A stretch of 64,000 nucleotides of DNA. It comes from Kudoa neothunni (Eukaryota > Animalia > Cnidaria). The notes beneath the pieces were generated by a model. It saw only the letters and a list, made by a program, of their open reading frames with translations, searched no databases and was not told the origin of the DNA. The DNA lies in the NCBI GenBank assembly GCA_964304625.1, contig OZ199838.1, forward strand, positions 5,746,243 through 5,810,242, written 5' to 3'. Below, piece by piece: positions 11,020 through 19,957 of this stretch (positions are counted from its first letter, which is position 1; each line of letters begins with the position of its first letter). The position numbers were made by a program, and so were the translations under genes.

Positions 11020-12060
11020 TTAAAAAAAATAACGCATTCGAACGTTCAATCGTAACATAAGACAACCTACGTAATATATTATATCACTCGGTTTAATTTC
11101 TTTCAATTTGAAACATTGAATGCAACATCTAGCTGAATGATCACTGCAAAAATATCGGTTATACAATCCACAAATCACAACAGTTTTCCTGTCACTTTTT
11201 CTATGGCAGATTTGACACCTATAAGGTTTCATTATTCATTTGGATGATAGTGGAGATGAGTTTGATGAAGGTCTTTCAATAGTTTTTTTATTCTTATTTT
11301 TTAGCAATAATGGATTATATAAGTTTTTGGAAATTTCCTTAAGAAATTCACATCTAACGACGTTTGAGTTAAATATATCTTTACATGTGCAAATTGCATT
11401 TATAAAAGAAATATCTAATACATTAAAAAAACTATCATGGGCCAACGTTTGTTAAATCTTCTTGTCGAGACTGAAGCCAGCATCCGATCGATAATGTCGA
11501 CGCCTCCATTGGATCTATTATAATGGACAATAACCTCCAGTTTTCGCTTCTCTCCGTTGATGATATTATCGTTCATTGAACCGGATGATAGAAGATTGAC
11601 AGGTTTATTTTTTTTGTTCATATATGATACTATCATATTTTTGCCACAATACAGAAAGGTAGTGCTATAGAATTGCCTTTGTTTTGAGGGAAAGACACAA
11701 GGAGATAACTCTCTTATATTTTGGCGGATTGTACCCAATAGAGTAAGTTTTCTTCCAAGTAATTTATTAGAGAGATTTATCGAAGTGAAAAAATTGTCTG
11801 TTACTATATTTCGTCCAGAATAAGATAGGGGTTCAGTAAGGTGTAAAACAATATTTTCTGCACGTGATCTTGATATGGATGATTTTGTAAGACTCCAAAT
11901 TAATCCATCTTTTCCAACCAATGAAGTGTCATATACGCCAAGATTGTCGTCATCAGTTTCTTGAGAGACATCCTCAATCATAACATCCTCGTATTCACTA
12001 CCAGAAGAATCATCGTTATGTAATAAAAATTCAATTCAGAATCCATAGATATTTTCCTGA
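11020..12060 (-). pseudogene. piggyBac transposase remnant, internally deleted
   Basis: GRNIVTDNFFTS, LGTIRQN, YNRSNGGVD, RWP, C-terminal Cys-rich domain. Confidence 0.88.
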
Positions 12061-12449
12061 TATTAAATTATTATTGAATGCAAAAAAGATTTAATATTAT
12101 CTGGTGCAATCGATTGCCTTAATTGAACATGAACAATGTTCGGTTAGGTTACCTAAGATTTGTTCAAATATTAGTTTTGATTTTCCTTAGTATTCTGTCG
12201 ATAAATTTTTTTAATATCTCACATAACAAATTTAACGAAATTTACGTACAAAATTGTAAAATTAAAATGTTGGGTCGATTCGATCCCAAATGATCGTTAG
12301 AAGGTATCCTTCGAATTTTGGCTAAATAAAAAATCTAAATTATCCAATTTTCCTCATTTACATAGAAGAACGTATTTATGAAAAATAACTCAAATTAAAA
12401 AACAATAGAGTTAGGGGATAAAAAGTTATAGGTTATTCAATTTCATATT

Positions 12450-14616
12450 GGGGTCGATTCTTGATATCTTCGAGATAATGTGATCATCAAAGAGATTTTA
12501 AAATCGCCTTTTGGTAGATTTTGGGAATATCCCCTTACTTCGAATTCAGCTGAGTCGATACAATGCTCGGCATCATCAGCAATGGAATCAAATAAGGCAA
12601 CAGAACAGTCATGGCCGTCATCTTCTGTATTTAAACTGGTTCTCGCACCAAGGTTGAACAAATCATCACGGTCACTGATGATGGATAGATTCGCTGAGGT
12701 CTCATTGGTATCGCCATTAGTTTTGATAAAAGTAGAAAGGACAATACAGTAGGCGACCGTTAATTCGTAGGACCGATAATTCGTAACCTTCCTTAAAACT
12801 TTATCCACCCGGTTATAAATATCAGATAACATGTATTATGAGTTCTTAATTAAATATAAGTGTTATTTTTATATCTTATGTAATAAAAAGTTTTAAAATT
12901 TCGTAATAACCGATAATTCGTAATTATTTCTAAATGACCCAAAAAGAATTCACAAATTCATAATTCTTCAAGAGACATATGATATAATTACATATTATGA
13001 TAGTTTATCGCCCTTAGATTGAAAGACGGAAACTATTAAACACTTCAAAATAGGTTATATTTCAAATTTAAATGGCATTTTAGATAAAAGGCTCAAATTA
13101 AACAGGCATTTGTGAGTCAATTACTTCTAGCTATACGAAGATCAATGCGGAAAGGAAAAGACGATGCTGATCAACGCGTGTATGATTGGCTCATTTGGAT
13201 GAGGTCGAAAAGCATCGAATTATCGTCCATCGAAATAATTAACAACAGAAATGAGATTGATTCTTCTGAAAATGATTTCAAAAATGTTAGCTATGGATGG
13301 TTTCGTGACTTTAAAAATAGGTTCAACTTAAAAAAAATAGTTTCCATGTCGAAGCTATCATGGTACCCATAGGAATCATTACAGATTAGAACACTTAACT
13401 TCTTTAAATTCTTGAAAATTATAAAGAGGATCAAATATAATATGTCGACAGGACCGCTCTGTTTTATCAATTAACGCCTCTTAAGTGATTCCTAAACATG
13501 TTTACTTTAATTCCAATAAATTGTTTTTCCGTACATTAAATGGAACCCAAAAGTTCTTAATAATGTTATTTCCATTATAACAATTATTTTTTCGCGCCAA
13601 AAGAGTGCTTTATTATTTTTTAGTTTTGATTTAAATTATGAGTATTCTTAAATCGATGAATCAATAAAAGCCAGTTTTTAATTTTATTTTCATCGCGCGC
13701 GCAGGAGATTTTGCGAATTAGACGTCACTAGCGTGAAATTTGTAATTATCCCTGGCCCTGAGGGGATTATGAATTGGTAGTCACCGACTCTAATTTGATT
13801 TAAATCGGTTGGAACGATGATAAGAGAAGATATGGAAGGTTCTATATCATCAGGGAGAGAAGGAGAAGTTTCTTTTTGAATGTGATTGCTTTCTACCGTT
13901 AAACTGTAGTTAGTTCGGATGTAGTCAAAGGATGAGCCACAATTCTGCTCGTAGCGATCGCTGAAATGTCATCAGCGTTTACAAACACTATAAATTCATC
14001 TGGCAATGTTCCTTTCTAATTACGAGGATTACCAACTTTTCGATCTTTAAAAAAACTGAAGTTTTATCGTTTAAAACAAGTCCTCTTGTTTGCAGGAAGG
14101 CACAGAATGAACTTTACAAGACCTTTAAACGCAGGCGTTGCAAATTTGAATTCAGAACATGTTCAGCATTAACATCTGACTGCGCATTTATTGGCGCCAT
14201 TGAAAAATTATTATTGTTGGATTTCCCATAATTGGGTGCAGTGTTATCAGTTCTGGCGGTCTCTGCATCTTTATAAGTTGAATCAGCACAAGTGAATTCA
14301 TCCTAATGATTATTCAATGTACAGGCACGATCCAACCTTATGTTAATAATGTCGTCCGCCGAGCCGTAAATTAATCGAAATCCCTCAAACAAGGAAGAAT
14401 ACAATTAGAAGAGATGGCGGTAATATTTACCCAATTTCTTGTATAAGCAGCTTAGGTGCTCTCTATGGGCGCTTTTAAGGAGATAGAGCGAATAAAGACA
14501 ACACGCGTCGCCTGGAATTTCATATCTCCTAATATACTGGTCCAATCTACCCGATTTTTGCGTCAACAGATTCTCCAGCATAAAAGAAACATTTTGGTTA
14601 TAAAGAAAAATTTGCT
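12450..14616 (-). mobile_element. tRNA-associated element copy 2 (degenerate 5' part of the putative RLE retrotransposon, split by nested TEs at ~12747-13760)
   Basis: From ATG 14581: LDQYIRRYEI..YKKLGKYYRHLF*LYSSLFEGF, SNLQRLRL, VNADDISAIATSRIVAHP; below 12747: DRDDLFNLGARTSLNTEDDGHDCSV; all collinear with copy 1 ORF. Confidence 0.8.
12747..13490 (+). mobile_element. Tigger/pogo remnant
   Basis: TA-CAGTAGGCGACCG terminus; CENP-B-type HTH (VYDWLIWMR..SYGWFRDFKNRF). Confidence 0.75.
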
Positions 14617-14648
14617 TACGTTCGCAGAGTCGAACCCTGGTCGGCTGA
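14617..14648 (-). pseudogene. 3' half of tRNA-Gly(TCC) (from position 39)
   Basis: TCAGCCGACCAGGGTTCGACTC--TGCGAACGTA versus the intact gene TCAGCCGACCAGGGTTCGACTCCCTGCGGACGCA; followed by a T5 run. Confidence 0.85.
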
Positions 14649-14678
14649 AAAACGAAAATAAGATTAAGTTAGTAATTA

Positions 14679-16115
14679 CAGTCGTGATTGGATATTGCGG
14701 GCGCGATGTACTATAAAATACGATTTTTTTTGCGTTTACGTCGTGTACCAATTAGTAAAAATCAATTTTTTAAATGTAAATATATTATTTAATGTAATGT
14801 AATTTATCAAAGTTTGTCGAAAAAGCTTGTAATTTTAGTTCGTCGGAATCTTTCTCTTGATATTTTTAAAATCCGGTCCTTCATGGGATGTAAAACAAAC
14901 AATCCGACGGATCTACTTTAATAAAAGCTTCCCTCAGAACGTTCACTGTATTTTTCATTTGTTTAATTGGAATTTTGATGTCTTCAATGATTGACTCGCT
15001 ATCGTCAGATTCGTCGCTTATGAGCAATAAGCTCTCACACCTTCTTGGTCTATAAAGTGACAATAACTTTATTGTCGTAATTTTATTTAATACCTCCAAA
15101 TATTTTTGATTTTTAAAGCAATTAATAATAATTTGTGACGGAATACTATCCCAACATTTAGTTAGTGTTATCATTAAGTCAAGCAATGCATATTTTTTTA
15201 TGGCAGGATCTTTGCATAAAACCATTCGCTTGGTCATTGAACTTTTGTACCTGCTTTTAAGATAGCGAATGATGCCTAAATCAAGGGGTTGTAAAATACT
15301 AGTTGTATTTTTGGGTAAGAACAAAAATTTGATATTTTCAAAGAAATCAATGTTTTTTTGGTAGCCTGGACATTGGTGCAACAGAATTAAAACTTTTCTA
15401 TCCTGATTTATCATCCTTCGGTTAAACTTTCTCATTATTTCTATAAATACACTAGGCGTCATCCATGCACTTTTGTGTGCATAATATTCAAATGGGAGGT
15501 GTTTGGCTCTTAAAACATCTGGGATTTTGAAATTTCTCTATAACAACTAATGGGAACTTAACTCCATTTAAAGCTGAGGACGGTAAAACAGTCACCCTTT
15601 TTTTGGATAATTTTTCTCCTTAATTCCGGCTTCCTCCTTTAAAACGTAACTACTATTTTGTAACTGCTCATAATAAAGAGCAGTTTCGTCGATGTTTATA
15701 ACGTCTTTTGGATTATATACTCTAATCGAATAAATGTTTTCAATAATCCATGAGTCGACAGATGCAACATCTGCACTCGCAGCCCCTCCATTGAACTTTT
15801 TGAAAACTATCCCATATCTTGACTTGAACCTTCAAAGCCGCCCCTTGCTGTCCTTAAAATTGGAAACTTTGTTCTCATTTGCAATATAAGAAGCCTTTTT
15901 GATAATCGCATCTCCCAACAGAACGTTACCATTCGACGGTTGTTTAACAAACCAATCGTACACTTCATCGTCTATATTTTTTAATCTGTCTGCCGAATGT
16001 CTCTCCCTTTTACTTTCAGTATCTGTATTTTTTAATTTATCTTCGTGCGAAAGAATTTTATCAAGTGTTGAATGACCTTAATTGTGATTTTACATTAATA
16101 TTCAATAGAAGACTA
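14679..16115 (-). mobile_element. Tigger-like transposon, 5'-truncated
   Basis: NIDETALY, FLPKNTTSILQPLDLGII; TA-CAGT terminus at 14679. Confidence 0.87.
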
Positions 16116-17197
16116 GGCTAAATTACAATGGCCGTGCATCCAATGGGGAAAAATGAAACACCTCGCAAAATGTCGGAAAAATAAATTTTTACTATTTAAA
16201 AACCATTATATATTTAAATAAAGTCGATAATTCTTTTCTACTATATTTTCTTCGAAACATGAAATCAACAACATAGTTAAGAAGTGTTTCTGGGGTTTTA
16301 TTTGTGGCATTTCTATATTTTCTTTTAAAGCCCCCATGTAGCTTCTATTTTGTTTGTGTGAACCTCGCTAGATGAAACAAATTCGGTTGTATGGTTAACA
16401 ACTTCATGGAAGTAGCCTATAGAATTTGCATTTCTATATCCACCCCGGCAGTCAGACCATATCATGGAGCCAACTTCGACATTTCTCGAAATGATCATCT
16501 CCAGAGTTTGTTGGTTTCTTACTGTCGTTATCTCCATAAAAACGTTGCCAATTTCGTCGATTCTTCCCACAATCCACTGCTCATGATTAGTCAAAATTCT
16601 ACCTACATTGTATTTGCGTTTGCAAATTAAGCTTTCATCAACTTGGACAATCATTCTTGTCGCTCCAATTTTGGTAGAATTGCAGATAAAATAATTACAA
16701 TATATATCGCGGATGAAGTTCTTCCAACCAAATACTGTTTTCGATGTCACCTTTTTTTCTTTGATTAAAAAATCTTGATTGTAAATATCATTCGAATAAT
16801 AATACAGCAACTTCAATATTTGACTGAAACTTAGACAACTTCTTTCAAAACACTAACCTCTTCTAATAAAAAAATATTTTCGACATTTGTTACAATGAAA
16901 GATATAACCATCTGTAACACTTGCTATTTTTGTTAACGACATAGAGTCGCCACAACAGTTCACGTTCTTCGCAATTAAGCCAAAATGCATCATAAATTTG
17001 ACGCACTACTCCGTATTTAAGTCCAACAAATCAATAAAAAATATATTAATGTCTTCTAAGTTGATGGTACTAATTTCTGGCAGAGGAACTTTCTGGCAGA
17101 GGAACAACGACATTCATTTGGCGGCGTGCCAATATTAATCCGATTATAGCAACGAAGACCATTTGCGCGCGCACTGACACTAAACCCCACTTTAGCC
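16116..17197 (-). mobile_element. Merlin/IS1595-like transposon
   Basis: VQVDES..KRKYNVGR, WSD, HTNKIEATW; GGCTAAA termini; no matching TSD. Confidence 0.87.
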
Positions 17198-19820
17198 CGG
17201 CTTTTTTATCCTCATGATTCATTAGGACAATGTCAGGTCGGCGGTTTGAGGCAATGTTGGGGATTTGTTGATTAGTCCTGAGCTCCCAATTTTTGAAAGG
17301 TTGTATCTTCTTTATGATGAGCTCGAGGACCTTGTCATGTCGGTGGGTTTGTTGGTTATTCGATATTCTGCACCCGTTGAGAACGTGGCGGAGGGTTTTG
17401 ACATCACAGTTACAGTGTCTACACCGTTGATCAGGGGCTCTCTGTGTTTTGTTGAGGACGGCCTTCGTCGGCAAATAGTTGATGCGTCCTAGGATACCAA
17501 ATCTGTACGTTGATAAATCAATGTTACCTGTTCGGATCCAGGAGTTTGCTGTTTTCTGGTCGCCAACGGAGATGAAGGATCTTGCTTGATTGAACATTCC
17601 TGCCCAGTCATTAAGGTGAAGCAGTTGATAATTCCGTCGTAGCCGTTTGATACGGGTAATATATGGGCTTCGATAGGGGTTACCACGGTTTTCACCAAAG
17701 ATATCCTCAGGTTTGACGGGGGTGTCGAGGTCGATATTGGTGGGGTCGTCGTCATCTTCGTCTTTGAGGGCGAGTTGAATCTTCAAGGCCTTCCGATTCG
17801 TTCTCATCGAAGACAGAAGTAATTTGATGTCTCGAGTGGGAACCTTGCTCTCTTTCGAGATTAAGGTAGTCCACTGGACTCAAGGGGTTGGCCTTGGTCC
17901 GTTTGGCGACGACGGTTTTGAGGGATTCTCTGGAGACAAACTTGACGCGGTGATCGGTTTCGTGACTTCTCGAAAGCATCATTTCGCATTTTTGCGATAC
18001 AAACCGCGAAGTCGACGAGTTTTTGCTTGCTCGGAGGTTCGTTCTTGTTGAGATGGTGTAATAGGAACTGCCGGTTGCGAGAATTCGTTTTCTTGCTGGT
18101 GGAGCTCGAATGATTGGGATGCTTGTGCTTCTTTCGGTGGTTGGTTGGCTCTCTTAATTTGAGGCTCAAAAAACATGCCGAGACCTTTTGACAGGTTTTG
18201 ACATCTGTCAATAAAGGTGTTGTAGAGGACAAGGGGTTCCAATCGGTTGTTGTGGTTGAGGAATATTTTGAGGTCTTTTGAGACCTCAGATATCTTCACT
18301 TGCTGAGCCGATTTCTGCTCTCTTTGCTTCTCGGAGTAGGATTTTGATATTGGAGAAGCATCGGTCGCGTCAACAGTGGCTGCAACGTTGGAAGTGGTGG
18401 GAATTGGGGATTGAACTTCTGAAGGGGTGGATGGATGGCTGTTGAGTTCCATCGTTATCATCAGAAGGAGATTGAGAAGGTTGGGTGGACGGAGAGTTGG
18501 AGAAAACGCAGTTTTCTCTGACATCTCGGAGGAAGGAATCAATTTCTTGCGTAACTGGTTCATTTGAAGATGGAGAAGGGGATTTGGTGAGTTTGGATGG
18601 GTGGGAAACCGTATTTGTATATGGGATGTCTGGATTTCTTCTTTTTTGGAGACGAAATTCAGATTCGAACTCGAATGTGGGAAATTCATCATCAGCTTTG
18701 TCATTATCAGCAGGAGCATCGGGTGCAGCTAATGGTGAAGTGAAGGTTGAGTGGAACGAAGCAGTGGATGAGATGGAACAAGTTTCATCATCATCGTTTC
18801 TGTTTAGATCGATTTTTCCGTTTAAAACGAAAAAATCGCGGGTTTTGGTTGTCGTTGAGGGTTCACTGGGTTGGTTTTCAGCAAACACATCTTCAACAGC
18901 CACAGTAAGTTGCTTGGGTGGAATGTCATCGTCATTGACATTAGTGTTGGTGGATTGGGAGGAGGAAGTTGAACAGACGGTGTGGAAGTGTCTGTATCGT
19001 CAATGTCTTCAGCAGAAGTGTTGTTATTGGAAGGAATGGAGGTTGTAGATGAAATGGAAGTTGTAGGAAGAGAATTGGTTTGTGGAAGTGCAATAATTTT
19101 GGTCGGTGTTAGCACAAGTAGGTTATCCGAGCTCATAACGTTCGAAAAGAGGCCATTTGCAGCATGTTCATCGACAATTAGCACTTCCAGTTCAGTCAAT
19201 TTCCGTTCGTACGTCGCTTGTAGACGTTGGAATAGTACTTTTTTGGCTATGGGCATTCTCGTCACCATTTTGAGTAGTTCTGAGAGTGGTAGCCGCTTGA
19301 TATTGGCTGTAAAGGGAGAAACCAGCGAAATTGCAGTATGGTGACCGCACATGGCGGCCATTGTTGTTGCTTCTTCTGTTGGTTCTCCAGCATCAGTACC
19401 AGTAGTATACGAAAGATCATCAGAATTAGCTAAAACAACTTCGTTCGAAGCTGTGTCAACTAATCCAGAGTCTCCATTATTAGTGGTAGCATTGTTAAAC
19501 ACTGTGTCAACAATGTCGACAAATGTTTCATCCAATGCTACGAATTCTTCCACCAGGGAAGAATATAATTTTAGTAAGGCACGGTAACATTCACCGACCT
19601 TCTTTTCTATAGGCTTCAATCGCCTTCGTTTCTCAGTGCTTTCAAGATACGACAAATAACAATGTCGGAAGACATCACTAATTTCGTATCTCAGCACGTA
19701 GCGCTCCAAATTCAAAAAACTAGGCATCGTTAGAATCGCCACAACTTTCTAAACTAAATAACAGAAAAAGCAGAAGCAACAAACTTCGGCAAGTTTGAGA
19801 AGCGTATGCAAAAAAGAAAA
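17198..19820 (-). mobile_element. RLE non-LTR retrotransposon (NeSL/Utopia-like) copy 1; RT core missing, 3' end cut by Merlin
   Basis: Frameshifted ORF from ~19727; RLRGLYRKN pre-RT motif; YRFGILGRINYLP; CCHC knuckle CRHC..TLRHVLNGC; RHD; RPDIV endonuclease motif. Confidence 0.88.
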
Positions 19821-19830
19821 AACGACAGGC

Positions 19831-19902
19831 TGCGTCCGCAGGGAGTCGAACCCTGGTCGGCTGATTGGAAGTCAGCCATAATAACCGTTATACGACGAAC
19901 GC
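19831..19902 (-). tRNA. tRNA-Gly(TCC)
   Basis: 72-nt cloverleaf GCGTTCG...CTTCCAA...GGTTCGACTCC...CGGACGCA; T6 terminator ~8 nt downstream; TATA-like tract ~30-40 nt upstream. Confidence 0.96.
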
Positions 19903-19957
19903 AAAGCTCACGGGTAAGTCGTTTAAGAATAATCTATATATAATTTTTGTTGGTATA

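Follow-up and report, generated by a model that had tools for sequence, protein, structure and literature searches.

How can a retrotransposon whose 3' end lies inside a tRNA gene occupy the only copy of that gene in a genome and leave it whole? The question is raised by a stretch of 64,000 nucleotides (nt) from the cnidarian Kudoa neothunni (contig OZ199838.1, positions 5,746,243 to 5,810,242; referred to below as the window), which lies on contig 1 of a four-contig genome of 40.3 Mb with ~30% GC. On the minus strand of the window, an intact tRNA-Gly(UCC) gene is followed by a T-run, the remains of a retrotransposon (element 1), two nested DNA transposons, the 3' half of a tRNA-Gly, a further T-run and the remains of a second retrotransposon (element 2) (Table 1). 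This layout had been put forward in an original prediction made from the letters of the sequence, and each of its features was found in place by ARAGORN, Rfam, direct reading of the sequence and genome searches. The locus is very probably a ruined stack of two units, placed head to tail at the single tRNA-Gly(UCC) gene, whose elements have a restriction-like endonuclease (RLE) of the R2/NeSL type. The stack would belong to a clade of lineage-restricted distribution, each lineage of which uses one tRNA gene, and the gene would have been restored by a duplication between staggered nicks.

Two retrotransposon remnants behind one tRNA-Gly gene

The head gene is called as tRNA-Gly(TCC) at 19828-19903(-) by ARAGORN and at 19831-19902(-), with 59.5 bits, by Rfam. 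It is the sole tRNA that these two programs report in the window, and its sequence is present in one copy in the 40-Mb genome according to a whole-genome DNA search. The first T6 run begins 9 nt past the tRNA end, and the boundary between the target-derived trailer and the 5' end of element 1 falls within 19809..19830. The open reading frame (ORF) of element 1 starts at an ATG at 19727, 104 nt past the tRNA end, as had been predicted.

A relative with an open frame of 1788 amino acids (aa), located in another stack and read from contiguous genomic DNA, served as the reference for the window copies. By tblastn, element 1 matches only residues 774-926 and 1469-1685 of this relative, and residues 927-1468 are absent between 17958 and 17870; element 1 is without a reverse transcriptase (RT) domain, which was lost through an internal deletion. 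The part at 17199..17870 has 41% identity to residues 1469-1685, and at ~17460-17200 it reads C-x2-C...H-x4-C followed by RRPDIV, which is the CCHC/RLE signature of R2-type elements. This zinc knuckle and the RPD motif are in register with those of 47 genomic copies, and the Pfam match to zf-RVT is weak. Beyond the open 301 aa the frame shifts several times, and the RLE is cut at ~17198, with its (D/E)xK part missing and about 100 of its last residues lost. The window copies are nevertheless classified as degraded members of the RLE class, because the sister copy behind tRNA-Val(CAC) and the full-length members of the clade do have RT. The Val(CAC) copy (L035) retains both RT and RLE in a frameshifted state, and the copy behind tRNA-Val(AAC) (L036) ends inside RT. 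The tRNA-Val(AAC) that heads this truncated sister copy (L036:1764-1836(+); G000 C3:9739763-9739835) has the T-loop ATCGATA instead of TTCGAAC and an acceptor stem that is self-consistent; judging from these letters, it may be a decaying gene. At the far end of element 1, the stretch 14649..14676 is situated outside both nested repeats and occupies the position of the 3' untranslated region (UTR) ends of other lineages.

The tRNA-Gly half between the two units has 22 bases identical to tRNA nt 39-60, followed by a 2-nt deletion and two substitutions. By our own arithmetic, the chance of such a 22-mer match in 128 kb is ~1e-8, and shuffled windows gave no matches. A third tRNA-Gly half was not found further downstream within the window, even with up to 9 substitutions allowed.

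Element 2 is securely recognizable only from 14590 to ~14111, and its remnant does not extend to the RT region. The two ORFs had been described as homologous and strongly diverged, and the alignment of their N-termini is indeed significant (E 1.5e-6, with 29% identity over 147 aa and three stops; tblastx 1.3e-9). For the start of element 2, an ATG 36 nt downstream of the half had been proposed. An ATG is present there, at 14581, but the start that aligns with those of the other three copies is situated ~15 nt downstream of it and has become ACG. The DNA at 12732-12461, which matches element 1 weakly and colinearly (E 0.003), is tentatively assigned to element 2 as well.

Distribution, stacks and junctions in the genome

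The 4 genome matches to the N-terminal 301 aa of element 1 all follow a tRNA or tRNA half of like orientation at a distance of 45-95 nt (Gly, the Gly half, Val(CAC) and Val(AAC)), so that the flanks of these copies are not random. The linker-CCHC-RLE region gives 47 genome matches, which fall into 17 loci. At 16 of these 17 RLE-bearing loci an intact tRNA lies on the same strand within 7 kb upstream, and the chance of a tRNA head was estimated by our own arithmetic at ~0.003 per locus, for a genome of 40 Mb with at least 38 tRNA genes. The lone exception is a weak RLE-like locus (G000 C2:1819976-1820436(+), E ~0.003), which has no tRNA within 6.5 kb upstream. These genome-wide flanks bear out the proposal that the window holds remains of tRNA-targeting RLE retrotransposons of the non-LTR type (lacking long terminal repeats) in a tandem array. 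The further proposal of a family specific for tRNA-Gly had to be abandoned, the sole other members of the lineage being those behind tRNA-Val(CAC) and tRNA-Val(AAC). With the Val(AAC) copy included, the occupied tRNA genes number 17: Gly-UCC, Val-CAC, Val-AAC, Gln-UUG, Gln-CUG, Thr-UGU, Thr-AGU, Cys, Phe, Lys-UUU, Lys-CUU, Asn, Ile, Ser-AGA, two Met and Trp. As judged from these matches, Gly is one target of a clade whose lineages cover at least 17 tRNA genes.

Many copies are stacked with a period of ~5.6-6 kb, the spacers consisting of tRNA 3' parts and a T-run, and a tRNA 3' part lies 100-300 nt past the ORF stop at 25 of 29 RLE loci. On its 5' side, the first element is always preceded by a complete tRNA gene and T-run; no complete tRNA was found inside the stacks, and only tRNA 3' parts occur between the elements. 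It was predicted that one intact tRNA would head the Gln stack with a 5.6-kb period, and tRNA-Gln(UUG) was found there, preceded by unique AT-rich DNA. In the same stack, the non-adjacent spacers of L010 and L014 (G000 C2:7.58 and 7.60 Mb) have the same variant acceptor end and trailer and are followed by different types of 5' UTR, a pattern of sequence that suggests recombination or gene conversion within the Gln stack. In the Asn stack (L034, L023 and L019; G000 C2:7.73-7.77 Mb), the spacer halves show 0, ~2 and ~6 mismatches with rising distance from the intact tRNA-Asn, and there is therefore an age gradient along this stack. The same layout exists in European Nucleotide Archive (ENA) contigs from two other samples.

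Because a complete tRNA is situated 45-95 nt before the first ORF at every head, the tRNA might be regarded as part of the element, which would use the internal promoter of the tRNA for RNA polymerase III (Pol III), or the elements might, like TRE3 of Dictyostelium, merely prefer DNA downstream of Pol III-transcribed genes. Such an explanation is hardly credible. The heads are 17 different tRNA genes, of which Gly is single-copy, and the DNA upstream is unique at both heads that were read (Gly and Gln-UUG). The 5' halves of the tRNAs never recur within stacks, and the T-runs right after the tRNA would stop Pol III. Finally, the 3' junctions are sequence-exact inside the tRNA, and the endonuclease is an RLE, not an apurinic/apyrimidinic endonuclease (APE).

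The stacked arrangement also raises the possibility that the two units of the window arose from one unit of half tRNA and element, by an old tandem duplication or unequal crossing-over, instead of from two insertions. Identical neighbouring units do occur in other stacks, such as L015-L017, and the same variant half is present in two spacers of the Gln stack. However, elements 1 and 2, with their 29% identity, are as distant from each other as from the Val copies (32-33%), and the distance from the tRNA end to the start motif is 93 nt in one unit and 43 nt in the other. Moreover, clearly different subfamilies are situated side by side in other stacks. A duplicated origin of the window units is thus improbable, and the reading as two separate insertions is preferred.

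For junction mapping, each head tRNA was aligned with its own spacers, the anticodon being numbered 34-36. The first tRNA nt common to head and spacer is 35-40 in 12 targets: it is nt 38 in Cys, Phe, Asn and Ser, nt 39 in Gly (the window) and one Lys-UUU subfamily, and nt 40 in Trp and the other Lys-UUU subfamily. Since the element 3' ends are A/T-rich, often TTGTATAATTA, chance alone should produce 1-3 bases of apparent overlap. Irrespective of the tRNA sequence, all lineages have their 3' junction on the 3' side of the anticodon loop. A site-specific insertion with a precise 3' junction is a mark of RLE-type elements, and an element 3' end at a fixed internal position of the tRNA, here nt 37-39, is a mark of the tRNA-specific ones among them. 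The elements had been placed directly behind the tRNA; a tRNA of the same orientation does lie upstream, but the 3' junction falls within the tRNA itself, where anticodon loop and stem meet, and the whole gene upstream would owe its 3' part to duplication or rebuilding. The diverged Val 3' half after L035 was found by its T-loop pattern, blastn-short having missed it.

Different subfamilies at one tRNA share a trailer after the tRNA 3' part, which extends over ~17 nt at Lys-UUU, ~20 nt at Asn, at most 7 nt at Phe and ~55 nt at Gln, and they are entirely different beyond it. In a second species, the Asn spacers share another trailer, of 22 nt, while the element bodies are orthologous; for this reason the short trailer is considered to follow the locus and the remainder to follow the element. 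At the Gly, Val(CAC) and Val(AAC) loci alike, the T-run is immediately followed by TTCTTTTGCAT, which is therefore probably part of the element. Eight heads, at as many tRNA genes, have a motif with the consensus GAATCTAACGATG (at most 2 mismatches) 45-95 nt past the tRNA, the background being 5 per 128 kb. The motif contains or just precedes the start codon, and it is weaker at two spacer subfamilies (L019 and L020). At the eight heads (that of the window and those of L041-L052) the motif is kept though the element proteins are 35-45% identical in the linker-CCHC-RLE region, the sole region compared. Its conserved letters could represent a transcription start, a protein-binding site or a top-strand cleavage signal. 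A search of the spacers and 5' UTRs for ribozymes or other RNA families in Rfam returned tRNAs only.

Full-length members of the clade have a single ORF of up to ~1900 aa, in which a helical N-terminal domain is followed by a long low-complexity region, RT, the CCHC knuckle and RLE. Pfam recognizes RVT_1 (1.3e-33) and zf-RVT in these proteins and none of the accessory domains of NeSL and Utopia (C2H2 fingers, Ulp1 protease, RNase H). Their closest solved structures are R2 proteins, with E 1e-71, over RT and RLE. The N-terminal 280-300 aa match no Pfam family, and no look-alike of this domain was found in the ESM Atlas. AlphaFold2 models the domain as a bundle of helices plus a disordered insert, with a predicted local distance difference test score (pLDDT) of >90 in two blocks, and comparison of the model with the folds of the Protein Data Bank gave no match (best E 1.9). 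A profile search for the domain among 1.84 billion representatives returned two true relatives only; a third match, P0122, was rejected as a false positive, being a bacterial cadherin-repeat protein with a repeated DGSV-like motif. One of the two true relatives is encoded on a 5.9-kb contig of a third sample, with tRNA-Gln halves at both flanks. The N-terminal domain diverges much faster than RLE, and the modelled bundle is the obvious candidate for target recognition.

Among 5.8 billion proteins searched, three sequences have >31% identity, all of them from ENA assemblies. Two of the three are on contigs of one metagenome-labelled assembly (~38-40% GC), which show the same layout and carry Asn and Lys-CUU halves orthologous to those here. 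The copies linked to tRNAs form a monophyletic group, with a support of 98/98 for the RLE region and of 100 in a rough tree of RT and RLE. The RLE region of element 1 has as its sister that of the Val(CAC) copy, at 57% identity and with a support of 99/99. Gln lineages from different sources form a pair, and so do the Asn lineages. Repeated target switches are seen within tight clades of the trees (Lys-UUU, Thr, Ser, Lys-CUU, Gly vs Val). In the RT+RLE tree the clade falls nearer to RNase-H-bearing Phytophthora proteins and Ulp1-bearing proteins than to Myb-bearing R2-like proteins and stands outside the group to which the latter belong, a provisional placement in a FastTree analysis built without named NeSL-1, Utopia and LIN references. 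The clade has the CCHC knuckle and the C-terminal RLE, and the full domain of the relatives aligns with R2 structures. It differs from the R2 clade proper in its targets, which are tRNA genes instead of 28S ribosomal DNA (rDNA), and in giving no N-terminal match to zinc fingers or Myb.

Proposed restoration of the target gene and comparison with known elements

Target-primed reverse transcription is the established mechanism of the R2 class. In the favoured reading, a stack built by staggered-nick duplication, the endonuclease would nick the bottom strand at tRNA nt 37-39, and reverse transcription would be primed there. The top strand would be opened ~5-25 nt past the tRNA end, so that the tRNA 3' part and a short trailer, ~40-60 bp, would be duplicated and the gene and its terminator restored upstream. 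Because the restored gene could be hit again, it would be open to further insertion, and the stack would grow at its head, with older units further down. Growth at the head fits the decay of the Asn-stack halves with distance and the better preservation of the window unit next to the gene. Element 1, which is nearer to the gene, would be the younger unit and element 2 an older 5' stump. After its insertion, element 1 would have lost RT by internal deletion, and the end of its RLE and most of its 3' UTR around the two insertions of DNA transposons.

Alternatively, the gene might be repaired with sequence that the element brings along. The element RNA would start with a tRNA 3' part and terminator, for example from the spacer upstream of a master copy, the cut would be near-blunt at nt 37/38, and the upstream gene would consist of the 5' half of the target joined to the 3' half of the element, with no staggered nicks. 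The stack units do consist exactly of 3' half, trailer and element, and the presence of TTCTTTTGCAT after the T-run at Gly, Val-CAC and Val-AAC implies that some of the terminator region travels with the element. However, a first insertion at a new tRNA would produce a chimeric and probably dead single-copy gene, and yet the trees contain repeated target switches. In addition, the first 17-22 nt of the trailer track locus and species, not subfamily, and the analysis turned up no known route by which an RNA could begin at tRNA nt 38, nor did Rfam detect a ribozyme in the spacers. Because of the chimeric gene and the trailer that tracks the locus, repair from the element is rated below staggered nicks and is thought to be possible but unlikely.

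Several points also weigh against staggered-nick duplication. No insertion event, nick site or RNA end has been observed. From three raw metatranscriptome runs labelled as belonging to this species, no read mapped to 3.6 kb of DNA that extend from the end of an element across a spacer into the start of the following one, a zero coverage that speaks neither for nor against expression. Since the targets are single-copy, there is no empty site for comparison. No clean downstream end of a stack was found, and the length of the duplication is therefore derived from subfamily divergence alone, with estimates of the shared trailer that range from at most 7 nt (Phe) to ~55 nt (Gln). The window copies are too decayed to give the 3' junction of element 1 beyond the 28-nt remnant, and the stacks could have grown partly by unequal crossing-over.

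A broader proposal can be made for the clade as a whole, with a little less than an even chance of being right. According to this, the entire clade would have evolved a target-restoring geometry of cutting and duplication that allows it to live in single-copy essential tRNA genes (17 in one 40-Mb genome) and to accumulate behind them, its targets being set by the novel helical N-terminal domain and having been changed many times. If this holds, the elements would be natural, retargetable and gene-sparing machines for safe-harbour insertion.

tRNA-specific elements related to NeSL have been described previously, namely NeSL-1_TV in tRNA-Pro of Trichomonas, and LIN15_SM in tRNA-Arg and LIN25_SM in tRNA-Glu of Schmidtea (Kojima & Jurka, 2015, PMC4640811); the suggestion that the window holds a possibly undescribed family is consequently only partly valid. 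Like LIN15_SM, LIN25_SM and NeSL-1_TV, the present elements are RLE non-LTR elements with a 3' end at a fixed position within tRNA genes. The A/T-rich 3' end of LIN15_SM (ttgtataataat...) resembles the TTGTATAATTA ends found here (L008, L011, L019, L025 and L027), and kinship with the planarian tRNA-specific LIN elements is hinted at by a comparison in which LIN15_SM is represented by its published figure only. In that supplementary figure, read as text from optical character recognition, the 3' junctions of LIN15_SM are near tRNA-Arg nt 27 and one 5' junction is near nt 65, with a duplication of ~40 bp inside the tRNA (PMC4640811). By this reading of the figure, the upstream copy in LIN15_SM is without the acceptor end and the gene is broken, whereas the upstream gene here is complete with its terminator, and the junction is ~11 nt further downstream, at nt 37-39 vs ~nt 27. 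The targets of the LIN elements and NeSL-1_TV are multicopy by description; here at least Gly(UCC) exists in one copy only, and the elements have taken up 17 tRNA genes of one small genome.

In the Utopia stacks of Phytophthora, intact U2 genes are situated upstream, U2 from nt 39 downstream, and different families follow each other in succession; the authors favour deletion of a 5' fragment and mention duplication only as a possibility (PMC4640811). The present elements share with Utopia the mixed-family stacks, a downstream target that starts from a fixed internal nt, and an intact target upstream instead of 5' fragments. They differ in that the target is a tRNA and not U2, and in that the N-terminal zinc fingers of Utopia and its RNase H (in oomycetes) were not found. 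Their single ORF with RT, CCHC knuckle and C-terminal RLE is like that of R2 (structures 8gh6 and 9nl3, among others), but, unlike the 28S-rDNA-specific R2, they have no Myb or C2H2 DNA-binding domains at the N-terminus and carry instead a helical domain without known relatives. R9 of bdelloid rotifers, reportedly described by Gladyshev and Arkhipova in 2009, is said to be 28S-specific and to make a target-site duplication of 126 bp. To our knowledge, this duplication is not known to rescue the function of the target. Like R9, the present clade would be an R2-type element with an unusually long target-site duplication; unlike R9, its target is not rDNA.

Dictyostelium TRE5/TRE3 and yeast Ty3 also have tRNA genes as safe landing sites and leave these genes undamaged; guided by the Pol III machinery, they integrate at some distance from the gene, either upstream or downstream. 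These elements use an APE or an integrase and are not sequence-exact in the gene, whereas the elements described here have an RLE and a junction inside the tRNA. Dada DNA transposons comprise families that are each specific for one small-RNA gene, several of them around the anticodon loop (PMC8869645, PMC3706591). Unlike the present elements, Dada are DNA transposons, have the opposite orientation and disrupt multicopy targets. Site-specific elements are held to survive by choosing multicopy genes, where the loss of one copy is cheap (PMC8869645, PMC4640811). A literature search found no publication on tRNA-restoring insertion or on this clade. tRNA-specific RLE elements and stacks with an intact target upstream are already known; what is new here is the geometry that spares the target.

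The only tRNA-Gly(UCC) gene of the genome has been colonized and is nevertheless whole, implying that even single-copy tRNA genes can be occupied. If a staggered cut does restore the gene, this would be a simple route for a selfish element into essential single-copy genes, and it would also explain the puzzling Utopia stacks with intact targets upstream. R2-type proteins are under development for targeted transgene insertion, and a natural set of related enzymes that are directed at 17 different short conserved sequences and spare every one of them would provide useful comparative material on retargeting. For annotation, tRNA halves in this genome mark retrotransposon junctions and not tRNA pseudogenes of other origin.

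Coordinates and nested repeats

Table 1. Features of the tRNA-Gly(UCC) locus, listed in minus-strand order with the evidence for each
Feature	Coordinates	Strand	Evidence
Intact tRNA-Gly(UCC) gene, stack head	19831..19902	-	ARAGORN, Rfam RF00005, own-genome DNA search
Pol III terminator-like trailer containing two T6 runs	19809..19830	-	sequence read
Element 1 start motif GATTCTAACGATG (consensus GAATCTAACGATG); its ATG opens the ORF	19725..19737	-	motif search
N-terminal 301 aa of element 1 in open frame; helical domain specific to the clade, no Pfam match	18825..19727	-	alignment, AlphaFold2
Element 1 low-complexity middle, frameshifted, corresponding to residues 774-926 of the full-length relative	17958..18824	-	tblastn
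Scar of internal deletion, whole RT gone (~540 aa)	17870..17958	-	tblastn of 1788-aa relative
Element 1 linker, CCHC zinc knuckle and first part of RLE (RPD motif)	17199..17870	-	tblastn, Pfam, genome matches
IS1595/Merlin-like DNA transposon remnant cutting RLE	16116..17198	-	Pfam DDE_Tnp_IS1595 8e-10
pogo-like (DDE_1) DNA transposon	14677..16115	-	Pfam DDE_1 3.5e-26
~28 nt between pogo end and tRNA half, probable last bases of element 1 3' UTR	14649..14676	-	
tRNA-Gly 3' half from nt 39, acceptor end decayed, stack spacer	14617..14648	-	sequence comparison
Element 2: trailer, decayed start motif, stop-bearing N-terminal region	13806..14616	-	homology, unique DNA in genome
Dispersed repeat of ~1.07 kb interrupting element 2	12733..13805	.	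genomic copies
Tentative continuation of element 2, ending at piggyBac-like repeat	12461..12732	-	unique DNA, weak colinear match to element 1

The DNA transposons that had been recognized within element 1 are confirmed as an IS1595/Merlin-like and a pogo-like repeat, each with many copies in the genome. The former has dispersed genomic copies with 86-93% identity and the latter >20 copies with 84-93% identity. Their limits, including the end of the pogo-like repeat at ~14677, were set from the genomic copies, and no convincing terminal inverted repeats were found for either. Both are present in dozens of copies at 84-93% identity and have therefore been active fairly recently. The pogo-like copy of the window is without a 135-nt piece that is carried by other copies. 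The repeat that interrupts element 2 is non-coding and has at least 35 genomic copies with 77-88% identity. On its downstream side, the locus is bounded by a piggyBac-like ORF remnant at 11415-11981(-) and an associated repeat at 11901-12460.

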